From the sequence record ON000910.1: a DNA stretch of 64,000 nucleotides; one strand, given 5' to 3'. The notes below the pieces were generated by a model. The model was not told the DNA's origin and ran no database searches. It saw nothing but the letters and a program-made list of their open reading frames with translations. Each line of letters opens with the position of its first letter. Position 1 is the stretch's first letter. Position numbers and translations under genes: made by a program. Below are positions 1,509-63,703 of this stretch, piece by piece.

Positions 1509-1571
1509 ATTGTATTTTACCTTGTATTTTATAGTATGATATAGTATCGTATAGTGTGTTATTGTATTTTA
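1509..1571 (-). promoter_or_regulatory. Probable gp32 autogenous translational operator (repetitive A-rich leader)
   Basis: On the mRNA strand UAAAAUACAA occurs three times and ACUAU three times at 10-nt spacing, directly upstream of gene 32. Confidence 0.55.
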
Positions 1572-2212
1572 CTTTGATTTTTTATTTGAATAAACATTTC
1601 TTTAGCAAGAACTTCGTCGATTTTCAGCAACTTATCGTATGCTAAAGCTCGTGTCTTGAACTCGTGCCAGAAGATATCGTCTCCGTAATCTTTGTCGATT
1701 ACAGGTACGAAGTTCAATAATCTATTCAGAATTACGAACGTCTCAATTGAGATAGTATTTCGTAACACGAGTTGCATTATAACGGGATGCCCTTCGCCTC
1801 TAAACAAATCTTTGAATTTTTTATTCTCTCTATTTATAAGAGTAAAAATCGAAAGTAGTTCATTTTTGTAGTGTTGACTGTAAATTTCCATAAATCCCGT
1901 ATGTTTCAACCAGAATTCATGAGCGTCAGCACCTGCAATCTCATAAGAAATCGCATTGGGGTTCGCTGCTAAGTTACTAACAAGCAACTGATAGCAATCA
2001 TTCAATGTTAGCCGTTTGGCTAGCCGTTCAAAAAACACCTTATCTGAACGCTTCTCGAACGCAGATCTAGGTGTTTTCATTCCGAGTTTATACTTGGAGA
2101 TGTCGTACTTTCCGCCCATATGCGCCTTTACAGCACAATAAACACGAAATACGCTATACCCATTGACCCAAGTCCGAGGCAGAACCAAATCGACTTCTAA
2201 TAGTCTTTTCAT
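1559..2212 (-). CDS. gp59: Helicase loader gp59
   Basis: NGYSVFRVY.AVKAHMGGKYD...KRSDKVFFERLA; 217 aa; upstream of gene 32 as in T4. Confidence 0.93.
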   Translation of the reverse strand: MKRLLEVDLVLPRTWVNGYSVFRVYCAVKAHMGGKYDISKYKLGMKTPRSAFEKRSDKVFFERLAKRLTLNDCYQLLVSNLAANPNAISYEIAGADAHEFWLKHTGFMEIYSQHYKNELLSIFTLINRENKKFKDLFRGEGHPVIMQLVLRNTISIETFVILNRLLNFVPVIDKDYGDDIFWHEFKTRALAYDKLLKIDEVLAKEMFIQIKNQSKIQ

Positions 2213-2758: not shown

Positions 2759-2797
2759 GTGCTGCTCATTATACAGCAGCACATGTTGTTCTAAACA
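2759..2797 (-). promoter_or_regulatory. Putative promoter upstream of dsbA (GTTTAG-N17-TATAAT)
   Basis: Minus strand reads ATTGTTTAGAACAACATGTGCTGCTGTATAAT; the -10 lies in the loop of an 8-bp inverted repeat. Confidence 0.6.
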
Positions 2798-3766: not shown

Positions 3767-3774
3767 TCTAAATA
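3767..3774 (+). promoter_or_regulatory. Late promoter variant TCTAAATA for genes 34-35
   Basis: One mismatch to T4 late consensus TATAAATA, about 40 bp upstream of the gene 34 start. Confidence 0.65.
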
Positions 3775-3814
3775 TATCATAGCGAATTGCATATCTAAAC
3801 AAAGGAGCAATGAA

Positions 3815-7530: not shown

Positions 7531-10224
7531 ATGTACGAAAGACTTAAACGTGACGGCGATTGGCTATTAATCTTTCGCCATGATTCAACAGGAGGTGTGT
7601 TTTTCACCTCCGATGCTGAAGCACGCAGCGTCGGGACAGATCCCGACGTTGAACAAAAATTCAGTGCGTTGAACTCACTTGAGGAATTTCGCCGTGAAGA
7701 CGGCAAATTCCAATTCAAGCTTCATTACCCAGAATTAGATGTAACAAACATTTGGAAGCAAAGCAGTAACTTTGCAGCTATTGATGTAGGTCAATATCTT
7801 ACAAACGGTAACTTAGCGGGTGGGGAATACGTCACTGAACAAAATGCAAAAATCGGTTCTTGGGTTATTGTTGAGAAAGAAAACCCAGGGTCATCAAAAT
7901 ACGTCGTTGAGCAACCGACTGCGGCACTAGAAGATCAATTACGTTTTCAAGTTCCACAATCACGTTTACTACCAAATAAAACATATACATTATCATGTTG
8001 GGTTGGGTATGAAGTAGACACTGATCACGATACGGCAGCTATATTTCACGCTCGTTGGTATGATGGTTCAAATAATGACTATACATTAGGCGAACATACT
8101 GCGGGTGATGTGTTTGAATCGGCAGGAAACGAGTTGATAGTTGACGGGATTCTTTGGAAGCGTCATTATGCTCGTTTCACAACGCCTAGTACTCTTTCAT
8201 CGAGTAGCATGTACTGGTATTGTTGTTATACAACTGATACAGGTAAATTACCAACAGGTAAGCGTTGGCTTACAAACTTCATGATTACAGACTCGCAAAT
8301 CGTCAAAAACTATACTGGCGATTACGACGCTACAACTCGCGGCGTTAGAGGCTATGAACCGATTTACATCGAAAGCACTGCAAATGATTGGGGTGGAATA
8401 GAATATAGCGTTTCAGCCAGTACGTTAGCAGACGGTTCAGTTGACATATCAAATTGGTATTGGGCTATTGGTGCAAAACGTTCTTGGCCAGACGCGACTA
8501 CTACATTCCCGGGACCTGGTATAAACGTAAATCAAGCTGAATTGTGGGTATATGCTCCTGTTGGTTCTAGAATCGGTGAATATGAAGTATCAGCTAGGCA
8601 TATCAGAGATTTTTCAAATAATAATATCAGACTGTTAGCAACAGGGGTCGCGGACGGAAGTTCAAACCTAGCATCATGTTATATAAACGATGTTAGCGTA
8701 TTCACACCCGAAGCTAAACAACAATATCAAGTTCGTTTGATTATATTCAACGACGATATGACAGTCAAAACTAATAGAAAATATCTTCTGAGTAGTTCTA
8801 CAGAACGTAGCAACTTCATCAACGGTCTGAACGGGTTAACAACAGAGCCGTTTGTTATTCTATCAAATGGGTCAATGTACGCAGATTCTGCGGTAGATGC
8901 TGCAATTCAACAGTATCACCCGATTGAGTATCGCGGTAGCTCTTACTTCAGTCAATACAGTTATAGTTACTGTGCATTCGGTACAGGTCAATTAGGTATT
9001 GTATATGATCGTTGTATGTTCGACCATGAATCTGATGGTGACAGTGTTGTTGATACTGCATTCGAAGATAAAGCAGGGATTGGTTCAAACGGGTACGGAA
9101 TTCCTCTAATCGAAACAATGACTGTTCCTACTGATACACGTCAACTTCTTTCAGATTATGGCGTGATAGACGGACAGTACTTGATTTACAAAGCTCGTGC
9201 ATGTATTGATCGAAATTCAGCAATCGCAAATGAAGACAAAATGGCGAATCTTCGATTCTACAACGTAGTTGGCGATGAAGTCGGCAGGCAGAATATTCAT
9301 TTTTACAGTGCAGAGAAAAAAGAAACTCAAGAATTTTTCGTACAAGTACCAACAGGTGCAGTTAAATTTGCAGTTTGGTCTAACTTACAACCAGAGTACT
9401 TTGATTACGTCATATTGACTAAAGGCGGAATGTCAACCCCGAGTGGTATACCTCATATGATTTCGAACATAAACGGTATCGCTGCTCAAGAGATTGTCAA
9501 TTCACCGATTACAGGTAACGTAGTTGATGACGATAGCTGGTGGCGAGCATATAACGCAGATTCAAACTTGTATGCAGGTATTAATATGCCAGTACAAGAA
9601 ATTGACAACGTTCAATGGGGTAATTATGTGCTTTCAGGCGGTGAAAAGTGTTTCACACGTACAGCAGGCTCATCATCTCCGATTGAAATGCAAGAAGTAT
9701 CAATCGACCCATCTCGACCATACTTCTTATCGTTATGGGTTAATGCTATAGACAAGCAAAATAGCTTCTTATATTTCAGTGTACGTGTCAAGAATTCATC
9801 TGGTGACTATAGAACTCTGAGATTATCAGACGGTAGTCGAACATCTACATATATCAATGTTGACAGAGTGTACGGGTTTCCTGCTTCAAACAATCAATGG
9901 GTTTTATTGCAGGGGTATATTCTACCACATGATTGGACAGATGCACAACATCAAGCGTTTGCTGATAAGTTTAACAACTATTTCGGTGTAATAAACCCAG
10001 AAGATGATCCGACATATCAGACATCAAAGGGTGTAGGTTATTACACCACAAACGCAGACAAGTCTTTTAGATGGAATGCTGATGATGATAAGTTGATACT
10101 TCGATACAAAGATGAAACAACCGTTGAAAATCAAGTAATGTGGGCTTTCCCAATTGTTACTGAAGTCAATGTTGCTAGTTCGTTTGAAGACAACTTCACT
10201 GCAATCGACTTTGCAATGAAATAA
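7531..10224 (+). CDS. gp35: Long tail fibre hinge gp35, with large N- and C-terminal extensions
   Basis: Central region (about aa 360-640) follows T4 gp35 (NNIRLLATG...LSDYGVIDGQYLIYKA...LRFYN...VQVPTGAV.F); directly after gene 34. Confidence 0.8.
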   Translation: MYERLKRDGDWLLIFRHDSTGGVFFTSDAEARSVGTDPDVEQKFSALNSLEEFRREDGKFQFKLHYPELDVTNIWKQSSNFAAIDVGQYLTNGNLAGGEYVTEQNAKIGSWVIVEKENPGSSKYVVEQPTAALEDQLRFQVPQSRLLPNKTYTLSCWVGYEVDTDHDTAAIFHARWYDGSNNDYTLGEHTAGDVFESAGNELIVDGILWKRHYARFTTPSTLSSSSMYWYCCYTTDTGKLPTGKRWLTNFMITDSQIVKNYTGDYDATTRGVRGYEPIYIESTANDWGGIEYSVSASTLADGSVDISNWYWAIGAKRSWPDATTTFPGPGINVNQAELWVYAPVGSRIGEYEVSARHIRDFSNNNIRLLATGVADGSSNLASCYINDVSVFTPEAKQQYQVRLIIFNDDMTVKTNRKYLLSSSTERSNFINGLNGLTTEPFVILSNGSMYADSAVDAAIQQYHPIEYRGSSYFSQYSYSYCAFGTGQLGIVYDRCMFDHESDGDSVVDTAFEDKAGIGSNGYGIPLIETMTVPTDTRQLLSDYGVIDGQYLIYKARACIDRNSAIANEDKMANLRFYNVVGDEVGRQNIHFYSAEKKETQEFFVQVPTGAVKFAVWSNLQPEYFDYVILTKGGMSTPSGIPHMISNINGIAAQEIVNSPITGNVVDDDSWWRAYNADSNLYAGINMPVQEIDNVQWGNYVLSGGEKCFTRTAGSSSPIEMQEVSIDPSRPYFLSLWVNAIDKQNSFLYFSVRVKNSSGDYRTLRLSDGSRTSTYINVDRVYGFPASNNQWVLLQGYILPHDWTDAQHQAFADKFNNYFGVINPEDDPTYQTSKGVGYYTTNADKSFRWNADDDKLILRYKDETTVENQVMWAFPIVTEVNVASSFEDNFTAIDFAMK

Positions 10225-10248
10225 AAGAGCCCTTCGGGGCTTTTTTTA
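10225..10248 (+). terminator. Intrinsic terminator after gene 35
   Basis: GAGCCC-TTCG-GGGCTT stem with UUCG loop, then a T run. Confidence 0.88.
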
Positions 10249-10251
10249 TAC

Positions 10252-10343
10252 GCGAAGCGAAAAACGGTAAGAGGCGGAAAAATTCCGTCTCATCTTAGTA
10301 GTATTAGTGGTTTTAGTGATATTAGAAGTATTAGAGGGATTAG
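10252..10343 (+). repeat. Hairpin plus 6x TTAG (9-bp period) element, copy 1
   Basis: GCGAAGCG at 10252; hairpin 10271-10291; TTAG at 10295, 10304, 10313, 10322, 10331, 10340. Confidence 0.95.
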
Positions 10344-10344
10344 T

Positions 10345-10374
10345 GTTTAAGCAACCAATGATGAAATGTATACT
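10345..10374 (+). promoter_or_regulatory. Putative promoter GTTTAA-N18-TATACT upstream of uvsY
   Basis: -35-like GTTTAA 10345-10350; -10 TATACT 10369-10374. Confidence 0.6.
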
Positions 10375-10392: not shown

Positions 10393-10806
10393 ATGAAGCT
10401 ACAAGATTTAAAAATTGAATATCACGAAGACGTGAAAATTGACACAACTGCTTTAGAAACAGCAGCTATTCGAATTCCCGTTCTTCATGCGAAGTGGCTT
10501 GCATACCGAGCCGATGCAAGACAACTACTTATCAAAGCTGAAATGAAAATGGAAGCTGTGAGAAAAGACCGCTGGCTCTTTTATAGCGGCAAACATGACG
10601 ATGAAGTTTGTGATTTCATCGTAGAAAAGAGTGAAATGAAATATGCTCTTGCGGGTGATGAATATCTTCAACGTGCAATTGCTACTTTTCAACACATGAA
10701 AGATGTGTTATCATTCATCGAAGAAGCTTTGAAAGGCATTAGTCAAATGGGCTTCACAATCAAACACATTATTGACAACAGAAAAATTGAGAGTGGTATA
10801 GTATGA
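10393..10806 (+). CDS. uvsY: Recombination mediator UvsY
   Basis: MKLQDL...EDVKIDTT.LE..A..IP.L.AKW...YSGK...KSEMK...GDE; 137 aa as in T4. Confidence 0.93.
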   Translation: MKLQDLKIEYHEDVKIDTTALETAAIRIPVLHAKWLAYRADARQLLIKAEMKMEAVRKDRWLFYSGKHDDEVCDFIVEKSEMKYALAGDEYLQRAIATFQHMKDVLSFIEEALKGISQMGFTIKHIIDNRKIESGIV

Positions 10807-11701: not shown

Positions 11702-13234
11702 CTATGCGGCAAGATCTACTTTCTTGACTGCGTATTTGAACTCTTCTTGGTTGTAAAGCTCAATACGTTGCATACCATGCTTTAGCGTATAGTTAACATG
11801 ACTATATGGATTCTTAGCATTCTTGCGCTTTGACTTGACACCCAAATTATCAATAATGTCAAACAATTTTGCAGTAACTTTAGAACCGTGCTTACGAAGA
11901 ATACGCCCAATACTTTGCAGCGTGAGTATTTTTGATTTTGTGGGATGTGCGTAAATTACGTTGTGTAGTTTCTTGATACTGATACCAGTCGAGAATACAC
12001 CATACGATGCTACGATAATAGCCCCGTCAATATCTTCTGCAATCTTCTTAACATGCGTACGGTCGTCAGTTTTAGTTTCACCAGATACGTAGAACACTTT
12101 CTCTGGGTCATATACGCTCTTCAACGCTTCGTAAAGTAATTTACCGTGTTTGATGTTCTTGAACAACAATAACGTATTCTCACCTTTCTTCGCGCTTAAA
12201 TGATGCGCAAGCTTAATCAAGTAACGATTTCGCTGCTTGTTCTCAAGAATGAATTTCATCTCTTCTTGATATGAACTACCTTTCATTTCGTCACGTAACG
12301 GCTGTGGGTATTCAAGCATTAAACAGTTTATCTTCAGATCTGTTACTTGCCCTTCTTCCATTAGCTGTGCAGTTGAAACAGGTCGGAAAATATCACCGAA
12401 TGAACCAACGTACTGTAGAATATTCGCTTTACCGTCTCGAAGTGAGCCAGTAAGACCGATTTTGTATTCACAGTTTGTCATTTTCTTGATTATACCGTCT
12501 AATGACTTACCTGTTGCCAAGTGACACTCATCGACTAAAAGCATACCGAATTGGTCAAACCATTCTTTCGGTTGTTTTACAGCAGATTGCCATGTAGATA
12601 CAACGATTCGGCAGTCACCGATTGCGTCTCGATCAACCCCACCACGAATTTGATAAATGTCGTTGTGTTCGAATAAACGATAATCTAAGAAGTCATCGCG
12701 CATTTGCTGAACAAGTGCAGTTGTAGGTACAATCACTAATACTTTCTGAAGTTCGTGCTCTTCTTGTGCTAAGAACCATTTAGTAATCAGCGACTGAATT
12801 AATGATTTACCCGCTGATGTTGGTAGATTCAATAGACTGTGTTGATTGTTAATTCCGTGAAACACAGAGTCCATCTGATACCAATACGGTGAAATCTTAT
12901 TCGACCCTGAGTAGATGTCAATAGACTCAACCCATGCTTCGAAATCTTCACGAGAAATTTTCTCAATCGGATCTAGCATTGGATCGGTTTCAATCGTATA
13001 CATCATATTTGATGCAAACGCTTTAGCTTGTCCGACTAGACCGTATGGCAATAGACCTTGATACGTCATTAGTCGAATTTTGCCATCCCATATGCCTGCC
13101 TTGAACTTCGGGTTGAATTTGTACCCGTCAGTCAAGAATGAAAAATAATCAATCATTTCATGAGTGATGCTTGGCTCGGCAACTACTCGTGCATAACTTT
13201 CGTCATGGTATTCAATTTTAATATCACTCATCAT
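11702..13234 (-). CDS. uvsW: SF2 RNA-DNA/DNA-DNA helicase UvsW
   Basis: LPTSAGKS, VPTTALVQQM, STWQS, VDECH, GLTGSL, STGISIKKLH, QSIGRILR motifs. Confidence 0.96.
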   Translation of the reverse strand: MMSDIKIEYHDESYARVVAEPSITHEMIDYFSFLTDGYKFNPKFKAGIWDGKIRLMTYQGLLPYGLVGQAKAFASNMMYTIETDPMLDPIEKISREDFEAWVESIDIYSGSNKISPYWYQMDSVFHGINNQHSLLNLPTSAGKSLIQSLITKWFLAQEEHELQKVLVIVPTTALVQQMRDDFLDYRLFEHNDIYQIRGGVDRDAIGDCRIVVSTWQSAVKQPKEWFDQFGMLLVDECHLATGKSLDGIIKKMTNCEYKIGLTGSLRDGKANILQYVGSFGDIFRPVSTAQLMEEGQVTDLKINCLMLEYPQPLRDEMKGSSYQEEMKFILENKQRNRYLIKLAHHLSAKKGENTLLLFKNIKHGKLLYEALKSVYDPEKVFYVSGETKTDDRTHVKKIAEDIDGAIIVASYGVFSTGISIKKLHNVIYAHPTKSKILTLQSIGRILRKHGSKVTAKLFDIIDNLGVKSKRKNAKNPYSHVNYTLKHGMQRIELYNQEEFKYAVKKVDLAA

Positions 13235-13760
13235 TAATTTCTCTGTGTTTGCAGTTATCAAAATGCCAACGCTTCATATTGGCGAGTTGTGCGGTTTTAT
13301 TACAATGTGGGCATGTTGCGGTCAATTTATTTGCTTCTAACTCGCGCCCTTTTAATTTAATCGAATTCTTTTTGCCTATTTTATTCTTTGCTTCGGCAGT
13401 GTGTGTCTTCCCGTAGAAGTGATTCTTATCACCTGATTGTGATTTGGACATCACCTCACGTGTTTTGCTGCTATGTTCAAAGCACGTATCGCCACCAGTT
13501 CTGATGTTGTAGCTATCATCACTTTCACAAAACTCTCGCGTGACGATCTCAGCCTCTAAATTTGCTGCGTCTTCTCGGTTGTCAAATTCTGCTATCACAC
13601 GTCTAGTGAATTCACTCTTCCCATGCTTGCGTATTGCATTTTTGATATGTATCCCAGAACCGAAATAATTTGTATCTAAGAATTCACAATCACATGAGTG
13701 TATACCGACGTATATTCGATTTGTTTTTGTATGTCGTATTTCATACACAAAATGTCTCAT
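13224..13760 (-). mobile_element. Free-standing GIY-YIG (Seg-like) homing endonuclease with NUMOD3-like and Cys/His C-terminal motifs
   Basis: FVY...IYVGIH...YFGSG...AIRKHG...E...YN..TGG; HSSKTREVMSKSQ.G.KNHFYGKTH; CPHC...MKRWHFDNC. Confidence 0.88.
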
Positions 13761-14557: not shown

Positions 14558-15046
14558 ATGTTACGATTTAATGAATATGAAAACACGCTTTACGGTATCG
14601 AACTGAGTTTATCACTTGAAGAGGGGTGGGGTAATCATAACCTAGCCAAACTAATCCCTGAGCCGAAAATCGATGAGTTACTAGAAACGAAACCGAAGCA
14701 CCCGTGGAAGATTGCTGCGAATGCTGCTCAATACCAGAACTTGCTCTTCAATATTGATTCAAGCCGAATCGTATTCAAGAACACTGTATATCAAGTTGCG
14801 TATCTAGGTAACTTATACCCGCCAGAAGAAGTCGGTAAACCTGAAGGTGGGTATAAGTTCGCAGTTAAAAAGTCGATTTATCACTCACACCCTAGTAGTG
14901 AATTTTATTCAGGGAAAAACCCAAAAGACCCTAAGTTAAATGATACTATTTCATTGGTCTGGTGGTTTCAGAGAGGTACAATCGTATTCGACTTATGGAA
15001 GCATAGCGAATATGATGAAAAACTTGAGAGATGGCGAAGAAAGTAG
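14558..15046 (+). CDS. Hypothetical protein, candidate internal head protein
   Basis: Late operon; N-terminus MLRFNEY...LSLEE resembles a capsid-targeting and gp21-cleavage leader. Confidence 0.6.
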   Translation: MLRFNEYENTLYGIELSLSLEEGWGNHNLAKLIPEPKIDELLETKPKHPWKIAANAAQYQNLLFNIDSSRIVFKNTVYQVAYLGNLYPPEEVGKPEGGYKFAVKKSIYHSHPSSEFYSGKNPKDPKLNDTISLVWWFQRGTIVFDLWKHSEYDEKLERWRRK

Positions 15047-15075
15047 TTGACAACTCAAATGTTTTTGCTTATTAT
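15047..15075 (+). promoter_or_regulatory. Sigma70-like early promoter
   Basis: TTGACA-N17-TATTAT. Confidence 0.82.
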
Positions 15076-17706: not shown

Positions 17707-17717
17707 GTATCTATTGG

Positions 17718-17746
17718 TTGACGACAACACCAAAAAGCCGTAATAT
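17718..17746 (+). promoter_or_regulatory. Sigma70-like early promoter
   Basis: TTGACG-N17-TAATAT. Confidence 0.65.
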
Positions 17747-19904: not shown

Positions 19905-19945
19905 TATTTAGACAGGTTGACTTATATTATTTAGTCTTGTACAGT
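19905..19945. promoter_or_regulatory. Back-to-back late promoter (TCTAAATA, -) and early promoter (TTGACT-N17-TACAGT, +)
   Basis: Minus 19905-19912; plus -35 at 19917-19922 and -10 at 19940-19945. Confidence 0.7.
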
Positions 19946-29950: not shown

Positions 29951-32261
<2,311 letters not shown>

Positions 32262-37597: not shown

Positions 37598-37627
37598 ATA
37601 ATAGCAAGCATATTCATGGTATTAAAC
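37598..37627 (-). promoter_or_regulatory. Putative promoter GTTTAA-N18-TATTAT downstream of repeat copy 2
   Basis: Minus strand reads CGTGTTTAATACCATGAATATGCTTGCTATTAT. Confidence 0.55.
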
Positions 37628-37639
37628 ACGTATTTAATA

Positions 37640-37732
37640 CTAATCATACTAATACTTCTAATATCACTAAAACCACTAATACTACTAAGATGAGACGGAA
37701 TTTTTCCGCCTCTTGCCATTTCTTCGCTGCGC
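37640..37732 (-). repeat. Hairpin plus 6x TTAG (9-bp period) element, copy 2 (inverted)
   Basis: CTAA at 37640, 37649, 37658, 37667, 37676, 37685; 37649-37714 is the exact reverse complement of 10269-10334. Confidence 0.95.
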
Positions 37733-37738
37733 TAATAC

Positions 37739-37769
37739 AAAAAAAAGGGTGAGAAATCAATCTCACCCG
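37739..37769 (-). terminator. Terminator after the short tail fibre genes
   Basis: Minus strand: GGGTGAGA-loop-TCTCACCC followed by a T run. Confidence 0.82.
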
Positions 37770-37808
37770 TTTATTAGCATTGACTTTCAAGCTATAATAT
37801 GCTTGTCT

Positions 37809-51707: not shown

Positions 51708-51745
51708 AGTTTTTCTCCGATTTTAAATTTATTTATAGAAAAGTG

Positions 51746-51774
51746 TTGACAGGCATATCTTATTTACCTATTAT
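51746..51774 (+). promoter_or_regulatory. Sigma70-like early promoter
   Basis: TTGACA-N17-TATTAT. Confidence 0.82.
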
Positions 51775-63518: not shown

Positions 63519-63543
63519 AAGCCCCTTACGGGGCTTTTTTTGT
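63519..63543 (+). terminator. Terminator after gene 3
   Basis: AAGCCCC-TTAC-GGGGCTT followed by a T run. Confidence 0.85.
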
Positions 63544-63556
63544 ATCTGAATCTAGA

Positions 63557-63651
63557 GCGAAGCGGCAGAATTTGGTGTGAGGCCCAAAAATTGGGCATCA
63601 TCTTAGTAGTATTAGTAGTTTTAGTGAAGTTAGAGGTATTAGTAATATTAG
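63557..63651 (+). repeat. Hairpin plus 6x TTAG (9-bp period) element, copy 3 (diverged)
   Basis: GCGAAGCG at 63557; hairpin 63579-63599; TTAG at 63603, 63612, 63621, 63630, 63639, 63648. Confidence 0.93.
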
Positions 63652-63673
63652 AGAATAGGCACCTTGTCGCATT

Positions 63674-63703
63674 GTTTAGAAACCACCAGATCTGTCGTAT
63701 AAT
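63674..63703 (+). promoter_or_regulatory. Putative promoter GTTTAG-N18-TATAAT upstream of gene 1
   Basis: -35-like 63674-63679; -10 63698-63703. Confidence 0.62.

Follow-up and report, generated by a model that had tools for sequence, protein, structure and literature searches.

Two sequence-distinct promoter classes of sigma-70 geometry in KVP40-like Vibrio phages, and TTAG arrays as a separate composite element

The genome paper of Vibrio phage KVP40 reportedly identified neither early- nor middle-mode transcription signals. Later work on KVP40-type phages defined only stem-loop early cassettes, the PeSLs of nt-1 and KVP40, with the sequence TTGYVH-N17-TAWWAT and a stem-loop (PMC4122927), and the only promoters of this phage type described in the literature that we could reach are the PeSL early, the 'PmSL' TGCTT and the late types. 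In T4 itself, the early -35 element is GTTTAC at positions -36 to -31, with a strongly conserved G at -36 (Nolan et al., PMC1524935). GTTTAC is shared by T4, RB69 and 44RR; in RB49, RB43 and Aeh1 the favoured form is GTTGAC, with G at -33. For the T at -33, a contact with the Alt-ADP-ribosylated alpha subunit has been suggested (PMC1524935). T4 middle promoters carry a MotA box, (a/t)(a/t)(a/t)TGCTTtA, centred at -30 and placed 11–13 bp upstream of the -10 (PMC2988021). Here we analyze 64,000 nt of Vibrio phage XZ1 (ON000910.1, nt 1–64000 as identified by megablast; hereafter the window), in which promoters with a TGTTTA box (class II) occur together with GTTGAC promoters (class I) and with three arrays of the tetranucleotide TTAG.

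KVP40-like phages, XZ1 included, carry two sequence-distinct promoter classes of sigma-70 geometry. As judged from its sequence, class II is nearest to the T4-family early promoters: both have G at -36, TTTA at -35 to -32, a 17-bp spacer, TAtAAT and A/T-rich upstream DNA, and the choice between T and G at -33 described for that family is exactly the split between class II and class I. Unlike the T4-family cases, both flavours coexist in one KVP40-like genome and divide its genes between them; such a split of the genes within a single genome into a -33T and a -33G set is apparently undescribed. Class II further differs from T4 early promoters in that C at -31 is not conserved and TGn is nearly absent, and in that it serves replication and recombination genes rather than immediate-early orphan open reading frames (ORFans).

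XZ1 is a KVP40-like Schizotequatrovirus and a relative of T4, with 98% identity to ValKK3 and about 82% to KVP40. As the XZ1 record is annotated 'hypothetical protein' throughout, gene names were taken from the RefSeq records of ValKK3 and KVP40; UvsY, DsbA and deoxynucleoside monophosphate (dNMP) kinase were confirmed by Pfam among the window proteins. For the genome-wide promoter scans, whole ValKK3 and KVP40 genomes were assembled from fetched pieces, and GenBank records of phages 1.081.O, nt-1, 6E35.1a and F86 served as wider relatives.

Within the window, the motif TGTTTAR-N17/18-TANNNT has 8 matches against 1.25 expected, a count reached in none of 100 shuffles; the relaxed form TGTTTAN gives 11 matches against 3.6 expected, again with 0 of 100 shuffles reaching it. 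The four sites named in the original prediction, before uvsY, dsbA and gene 1 and after array copy 2, are all present as claimed, and the further matches lie at rnh, in the interior of gene 59 (upstream of gene 32), and antisense within the late genes 35 and 17. Likewise, the four GTTGAC promoters that had been set against them were found within 1 nt of the positions originally given (Table 1). The uvsY start codon is at 10393, and the -35 and -10 of the promoter before it are kept in KVP40 and 1.081.O while the spacer has diverged. At wac, a late promoter, TATAAATA, lies farther downstream of the class II promoter.

Table 1. Promoters, TTAG arrays, repeat units and neighbouring features (XZ1 window coordinates unless another genome is named; spacing is measured from the last intact TTAG to the -35 G)
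Feature	Position	Strand	Description
uvsY class II promoter	10344..10374	+	TGTTTAA 10344-10350, -35 G 10345, -10 TATACT 10369-10374
gene 1 (dNMP kinase) class II promoter	63673..63703	+	TGTTTAG-N17-TATAAT
wac (fibritin) upstream class II promoter	37598..37628	-	TGTTTAA-N18-TATTAT
dsbA-33-59-32 block class II promoter	2768..2797	-	TGTTTAG-N17-TATAAT
rnh class II promoter	3771..3801	-	TGTTTAG-N18-TATATT
gene 32 distal class II promoter, inside gene 59	1776..1806	-	TGTTTAR motif match
gene 32 proximal class II promoter	1566..1596	-	TGTTTAT-N18-TAAAAT, relaxed motif
class II promoter-like site antisense within terminase gene 17	30057..30087	+	TGTTTAA-N18-TATATT
class II promoter-like site antisense within gene 35	8690..8720	-	TGTTTAG, TAACAT; status equivocal
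class I early promoter	15046..15075	+	GTTGACA-N17-TATTAT
class I early promoter	17717..17746	+	GTTGACG-N17-TAATAT
class I early promoter	19916..19945	+	GTTGACT-N17-TACAGT
class I early promoter	51745..51774	+	GTTGACA-N17-TATTAT
TTAG array copy 1	10295..10343	+	six TTAG, ends 2 bp before uvsY -35 G
TTAG array copy 2	37640..37688	-	six TTAG, 13 bp from wac-upstream -35 G
TTAG array copy 3	63603..63651	+	six TTAG, 23 bp from gene 1 -35 G
repeat unit 1, upstream part	10228..10294	+	gene 35 terminator 10228-10248, GCGAAGCG 10252-10259, hairpin 10271-10291, ATC
whole repeat units, window	10228-10343; 37640-37770; 63520-63651	+; -; +	
repeat units, ValKK3	98183; 53006; 245912	-; -; -	
repeat units, KVP40	35912, 79236, 129683, 210026; 184013, 238264	+; -	
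tandem units, 1.081.O gene 1 locus	L142:7000-7425	-	about 50 bp between units
TTAGTGTTTA occurrences, ValKK3	140983; 193462; 198975	+	TTAG two bases before -35 G
uvsY spacing			2 bp XZ1; 11 bp KVP40 and 1.081.O, last slot degenerate there
nrdH spacing			9 bp ValKK3 and KVP40, last slot degenerate; 0 bp 1.081.O
wac spacing			13-14 bp, five lineages
gene 1 spacing			20, 22, 23, 24, 26, 27 bp, six lineages
GGTTGACG promoter, ValKK3	224203-224231 (= L004:19203-19231)	-	KVP40 about 159640; outside window
ORF353, ValKK3	224086-224817	-	KVP40.0294; 243 aa, acidic tail
ORF351, ValKK3	223476-223772	-	Tad2-like domain
conserved region of gene 17	30045-30178	+	antisense site and two identity runs
XZ1 ORF absent from ValKK3	13224-13760	-	178 aa, between uvsW and next gene

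The two classes also separate when no motif is assumed. Hexamers were scanned over the whole ValKK3 genome at the positions 16–18 bp upstream of TAnnnT, and the most enriched were GTTTAA, GTTTAT, TTGACA, GTTGAC and GTTTAC. When only sites in intergenic DNA, at most 150 nt upstream of a same-strand gene, were kept, the GTTNNN sites of ValKK3 comprised 25 GTTTAN, 20 GTTGAC and 14 GTTGCN, each other form occurring no more than twice; the corresponding KVP40 figures are 19, 15 and 13, with each other GTTNN at most 3. The class I consensus consists of A-rich upstream DNA, GGTTGAC or GGTTGCR, 17 bp, GTATTAT and a conserved start region, and a stem-loop often lies across its -35. That of class II is (A/T-rich)TGTTTAN, 17 bp, TAtAAT, and the class I flanks are missing. 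Between ValKK3 and KVP40, GTTTA and the -10 form conserved islands in diverged spacers and upstream DNA (gene 1, the ligase region, the asiA operon, phoH, ORF375, the DUF2828 gene and uvsY), and class II promoters are kept in the more distant 1.081.O, nt-1, 6E35.1a and F86. The enrichment, the distinct flanks and the conservation in both ValKK3 and KVP40 bear out the proposal that GTTTA marks a promoter class separate from GTTGAC.

Class I has the features by which the PeSLs are defined (a stem-loop at the -35, TTGYVH, the flanks, a location in hyperplastic regions) and corresponds to the PeSLs of nt-1 and KVP40 (Arbiol 2010; Comeau 2014). Unlike them, class II has neither stem-loop nor PeSL flanks and lies in conserved core regions. 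The nt-1 'PmSL' TGCTT motif corresponds to the GGTTGCT subclass of class I and not to class II.

The genes behind the two classes differ as well. In ValKK3, class II promoters precede gene 43, the block leading to gene 45, the a-gt.4/30.3/47 block, nrdH-24-55, the block leading to ligase gene 30 and the block leading to td. They further precede the primase gene 61, gene 32 (two sites), dsbA-33-59, rnh, uvsY, gene 1, 57A, the tRNA region (three sites), queuosine/folate genes, phoH, the DUF2828 gene and the ORF354-ORF353 pair upstream of asiA. By type these are replication, recombination, nucleotide metabolism, tRNA and late-transcription factor genes; class I stands mostly before small ORFans or unnamed open reading frames (ORFs). 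We scored each site against the T4 middle-promoter table (PMC2988021 Table 1), where uvsY, dsbA and gene 1 appear with the MotA-dependent middle promoters PuvsY, PdsbA and P1, so that the T4 background given for these genes in the original prediction is correct. The search before other middle-gene homologues that had been proposed there was thereby run beyond the scale of the window: a T4 middle-promoter counterpart was found for 15 of the 27 class II sites and for 3 of the 40 class I sites (Fisher p = 3e-5). Homologues of T4 MotA-promoter genes behind class II are 43, 45, 61, 32, dsbA, uvsY, 1, 57A, td, 30 and the tRNAs. Given these proportions, it is well supported that class II marks homologues of T4 middle genes.

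How class II may be read follows from its geometry. The G of the box lies 24 bp before the first T of the -10 in 21 of the 27 sites and 23 bp before it in the other 6, which puts G at -36 and TTTANN at -35 to -30, with a spacer of 17 bp (21/27) or 16 bp (6/27). This is the canonical sigma-70 -35 register, identical to that of class I, and it agrees with the T4-family early -35 (G at -36, spacer of 17±1 bp to TATAAT). The -10 is of the sigma-70 type, TAnnnT with the consensus TAtAAT. As T versus G at -33 matches the variation reported for the family (PMC1524935), class I and class II can be taken as its two known flavours. We favour, with slightly better than even confidence, a direct reading of class II by the host sigma-70 holoenzyme. 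The host polymerase would contact the class II -35 through region 4; of the two flavours of the T4-family early -35, class II would represent the one with T at -33, and class I the one with G at -33 as in RB49 and Aeh1. The base at -33, together with the differing flanks, would set strength or timing, possibly through Alt-like ADP-ribosylation of the polymerase instead of a MotA-like activator; genes for an Alt-like ADP-ribosyltransferase and for an Alc homologue are present. Class II would then be the functional counterpart of the T4 delayed-early/middle regulon, though not a MotA-type promoter.

Several points weigh against direct reading by sigma-70. With TTT in place of TTG, class II fits the sigma-70 consensus poorly at the best-conserved positions of the -35, C at -31 is present in 4 of the 27 sites, and among the class II sites of the window a TGn extended -10 is clear at rnh only. 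The gene set is that of the T4 middle class rather than of the early class, and no transcriptome or start-site study of KVP40-type phages was found in the literature. The 24 bp upstream of class II are 69% A+T and A-tracts are partly present; the full 'uber' promoter set (C at -31, TGn, UP-type A-tracts) is not seen in class II. The other points concern AsiA, which is encoded (ValKK3 ORF352, Pfam AsiA 4e-46; the gene lies outside the window). KVP40 AsiA co-activates with T4 MotA in vitro (PMC2988021), which hints at a partner. Moreover, the gene upstream of asiA contains in its 3' end a promoter of sigma-70 consensus, GGTTGACG-N17-TATAAT. The 50 nt around this promoter are free of synonymous changes between ValKK3 and KVP40, and because of this constraint it is probably the early promoter of asiA itself. 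AsiA can therefore be early, and a cascade from AsiA to class II is possible. We had argued that class II fires without AsiA, asiA lying behind a terminator and a class II promoter, and this argument was dropped when the conserved embedded promoter was found.

Class II promoters could accordingly be true middle promoters that work by sigma appropriation with a different partner and a different box: AsiA would remodel sigma-70 region 4, and a phage activator other than MotA would bind TGTTTA at -37 to -32. Early synthesis of AsiA from the conserved promoter would fit this scheme. With T4 MotA as the tblastn query, no homologue was found in KVP40 and ValKK3 (best E = 1.5); the literature likewise gives AsiA but no MotA for KVP40-type phages, and the review that reports the in vitro result leaves room for a functional MotA analogue (PMC2988021). 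As in the T4 MotA/AsiA system, class II has the MotA-regulon genes listed above downstream, a sigma-70 -10, AsiA encoded by the phage, and a similar box (TGTTTA against TGCTTtA). A candidate activator would be ORF353 (KVP40.0294 in KVP40), encoded immediately before asiA and behind a class II promoter. The protein is highly conserved and has homologues in this phage clade only (at least 80% identity); as an activator it is not substantiated. ORF353 gave no Pfam, PHROG-function or PDB sequence match, its BLASTP comparison with T4 MotA is noise, and its AlphaFold model (predicted local distance difference test, pLDDT, 36.7) is too poor for a fold search. The position of the box is not that of a MotA box: from the end of TGTTTA to TAnnnT there are 18–19 bp in all 27 sites, not 11–13, and the register is that of the sigma-70 -35 and of the T4 early -35. 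Dependence of class II on an activator is thus the less likely reading, and the specific scheme with AsiA and a non-MotA protein seems to us doubtful, if worth keeping in view. Just downstream of asiA, ORF351 carries a Tad2-like (Thoeris anti-defence 2) domain (Pfam 2e-24).

The TTAG arrays turned out to belong to a larger element. As predicted, each of the three arrays in the window holds six TTAG with a 9-bp period. They form the end of a unit that usually runs, in order, terminator, GCGAAGCG, about 12 nt, the hairpin GAGGCGGAA-AAA-TTCCGTCTC, ATC, and 5–7 TTAG at the 9-bp period; the unit shares with the PeSLs that it often begins at a terminator and ends at a promoter. A blastn search with the unit gave six matching places per genome in almost every complete genome of the clade. 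The six arrays of ValKK3 and KVP40 occupy orthologous sites and are oriented with local transcription. TTAG, the 9-bp lattice, GCGAAGCG, the hairpin and ATC are conserved, whereas the five bases between consecutive TTAGs vary. Among 20 aligned units, the pairing of the hairpin is kept through GC-to-CG swaps (GGCGG/CCG versus GGCCC/GGG) and G-T wobbles, 91.7% of the hairpin cells being paired against at most 56% when the partner is slid. The hairpin of copy 3 is such a compensated variant, GGCCCAA/TTGGGC, and in the gene 1 unit of F86, where GGTT/AACC replaces GGAA/TTCC, an extra hairpin is inserted. As the pairing is kept by compensation and differing hairpin sequences coexist in one genome, a structure of the sense strand is favoured; the pattern points to an RNA or single-stranded DNA structure rather than to a sequence-specific site for a protein on duplex DNA. 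Rfam had nothing at gathering score in the window, with chance-level matches only at the repeat unit. When IMG/VR was scanned for five TTAG at the 9-bp period, the matches were tandem repeats of no relation to the unit, most of them in giant viruses; with a more specific pattern only KVP40 and VH7D matched.

The original prediction took the arrays for activator sites of the GTTTA promoters, and the wider comparison does not uphold this. Four of the six arrays stand before class II promoters (uvsY, gene 1, wac and nrdH); one precedes an early-type promoter, TGTTGACA (GTTGACA), 27 bp away, and one abuts the start codon of a lipoprotein gene, where there is no promoter. Seen from the promoters, only 4 of about 27 class II sites adjoin an array. 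The wac array of 1.081.O has the late promoter immediately behind it, and the GTTTA promoter is absent. The TTAG arrays are a separate composite element, independent of the type of promoter downstream, and they would adjoin the four class II promoters without being required for them. At the gene 1 locus of 1.081.O the unit is present in tandem, with the class II promoter only after the promoter-proximal unit. The motif TTAGTGTTTA, in which TTAG stands two bases before the -35 G, has only three occurrences in ValKK3, all at class II promoters (uvsY, 57A and the tRNA region), too few for a conclusion. TTAG is also part of GTTTAG. A connection of the array motif with the -35 region is conceivable, though not established.

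It had further been proposed that a protein bound to the array activates the adjacent promoter from a fixed helical face. The distances of 2, 13 and 23 bp in XZ1 on which this was based are correct; they step by 11 and 10 bp, and for these three copies alone the concentration of phase has p = 0.008. With the fourth array-linked promoter of the same genome added, p rises to 0.05–0.21. At gene 1, where array and promoter are intact in all six lineages compared, the spacing ranges over 20–27 bp without any phase preference (R = 0.27, p = 0.67), and because of this variation among relatives helical phasing is unsupported. The nrdH copy stands at 0 or 9 bp, an early-type promoter lies behind another array at 27 bp, and most class II promoters have no array at all. 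The near-constant spacing at wac in five lineages would fit a fixed face; it need not mean phasing, however, since the spacer is conserved in sequence too. We infer that the 2/13/23-bp series of XZ1 is a coincidence, and consider activation from a fixed helical face very unlikely.

What the units do instead might have to do with replication. In T4, at least five origins depend on promoters close by, among them PuvsY/oriF and P34i/oriG, and a middle promoter and an origin lie inside T4 gene 34, the neighbour of gene 35. The array-linked and antisense class II promoters could then mainly prime origins through R-loops, with the TTAG/hairpin units as iteron-like organizers of about six origins. 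The six unit places of KVP40, at 36, 79, 130, 184, 210 and 238 kb, are separated by intervals of roughly 26–54 kb; the copy at uvsY has the place of oriF in T4, and several copies are found, like T4 origins, at the edges of late-gene blocks. The arrays persist after promoter loss, as at wac in 1.081.O, and the hairpin is maintained by compensatory changes. Like the T4 origins oriF, oriG and oriE, the set includes the uvsY promoter, promoter-like sites antisense in late genes and several dispersed places, and evenly spaced direct repeats are found at one T4 origin, oriE. The antisense site in gene 17 (a minus-strand gene) is unusually conserved: it lies in the gene's longest run of perfect identity, 50 nt, between XZ1 and 1.081.O, which are 79% identical overall, and the second-longest run, 44 nt, follows closely downstream. 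The pattern suggests that an antisense promoter and its transcript are conserved in gene 17, which recalls the antisense primer RNA of T4 oriE in gene 5. At the antisense site of gene 35, TGTTTAG and TAACAT are kept in KVP40 (gene 71% identical) and not in 1.081.O.

Other features do not fit an origin. The arrays lie upstream of the promoters, whereas the T4 R-loop is found downstream of the promoter, where it forms with the origin transcript; a class II promoter is missing at two of the arrays, and a search for an initiator protein identified none. No motif is common to the T4 origins, and at oriE the repeats, of 12/24 nt, are coding and bear no similarity to TTAG; the TTAG arrays are intergenic and have a 9-bp period. 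The oriE 'iterons' were considered as relatives of the arrays and rejected, being unrelated coding repeats. Literature searches on repeats or origins of KVP40 found nothing relevant. On balance we regard an origin function as unlikely. A broader combination, in which class II would be the middle-mode regulon of MotA-less AsiA phages, read by an AsiA-remodelled polymerase with a non-homologous activator (the asiA-neighbour protein being the candidate), and the TTAG/hairpin units would act as enhancers or origin organizers for a subset of sites, appears to us distinctly questionable.

Two further observations concern gene content. The XZ1 ORF at 13224–13760 is missing in ValKK3, coordinates shift by about 523 bp, and in PVA23 a homing endonuclease is annotated somewhere within the matched 9–13 kb stretch.

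The role of AsiA in phages without MotA has been a standing question since 2004–2010. A concrete and conserved promoter set, with about 25 sites per genome, now marks the replication and recombination regulon of KVP40-like phages, and it differs from the early cassettes mainly by T instead of G at -33. With this set the AsiA question becomes addressable, as a choice between a MotA-independent middle mode and two strengths of early promoter. The TTAG arrays can now be separated from the promoter question, and each of the two can be studied alone.

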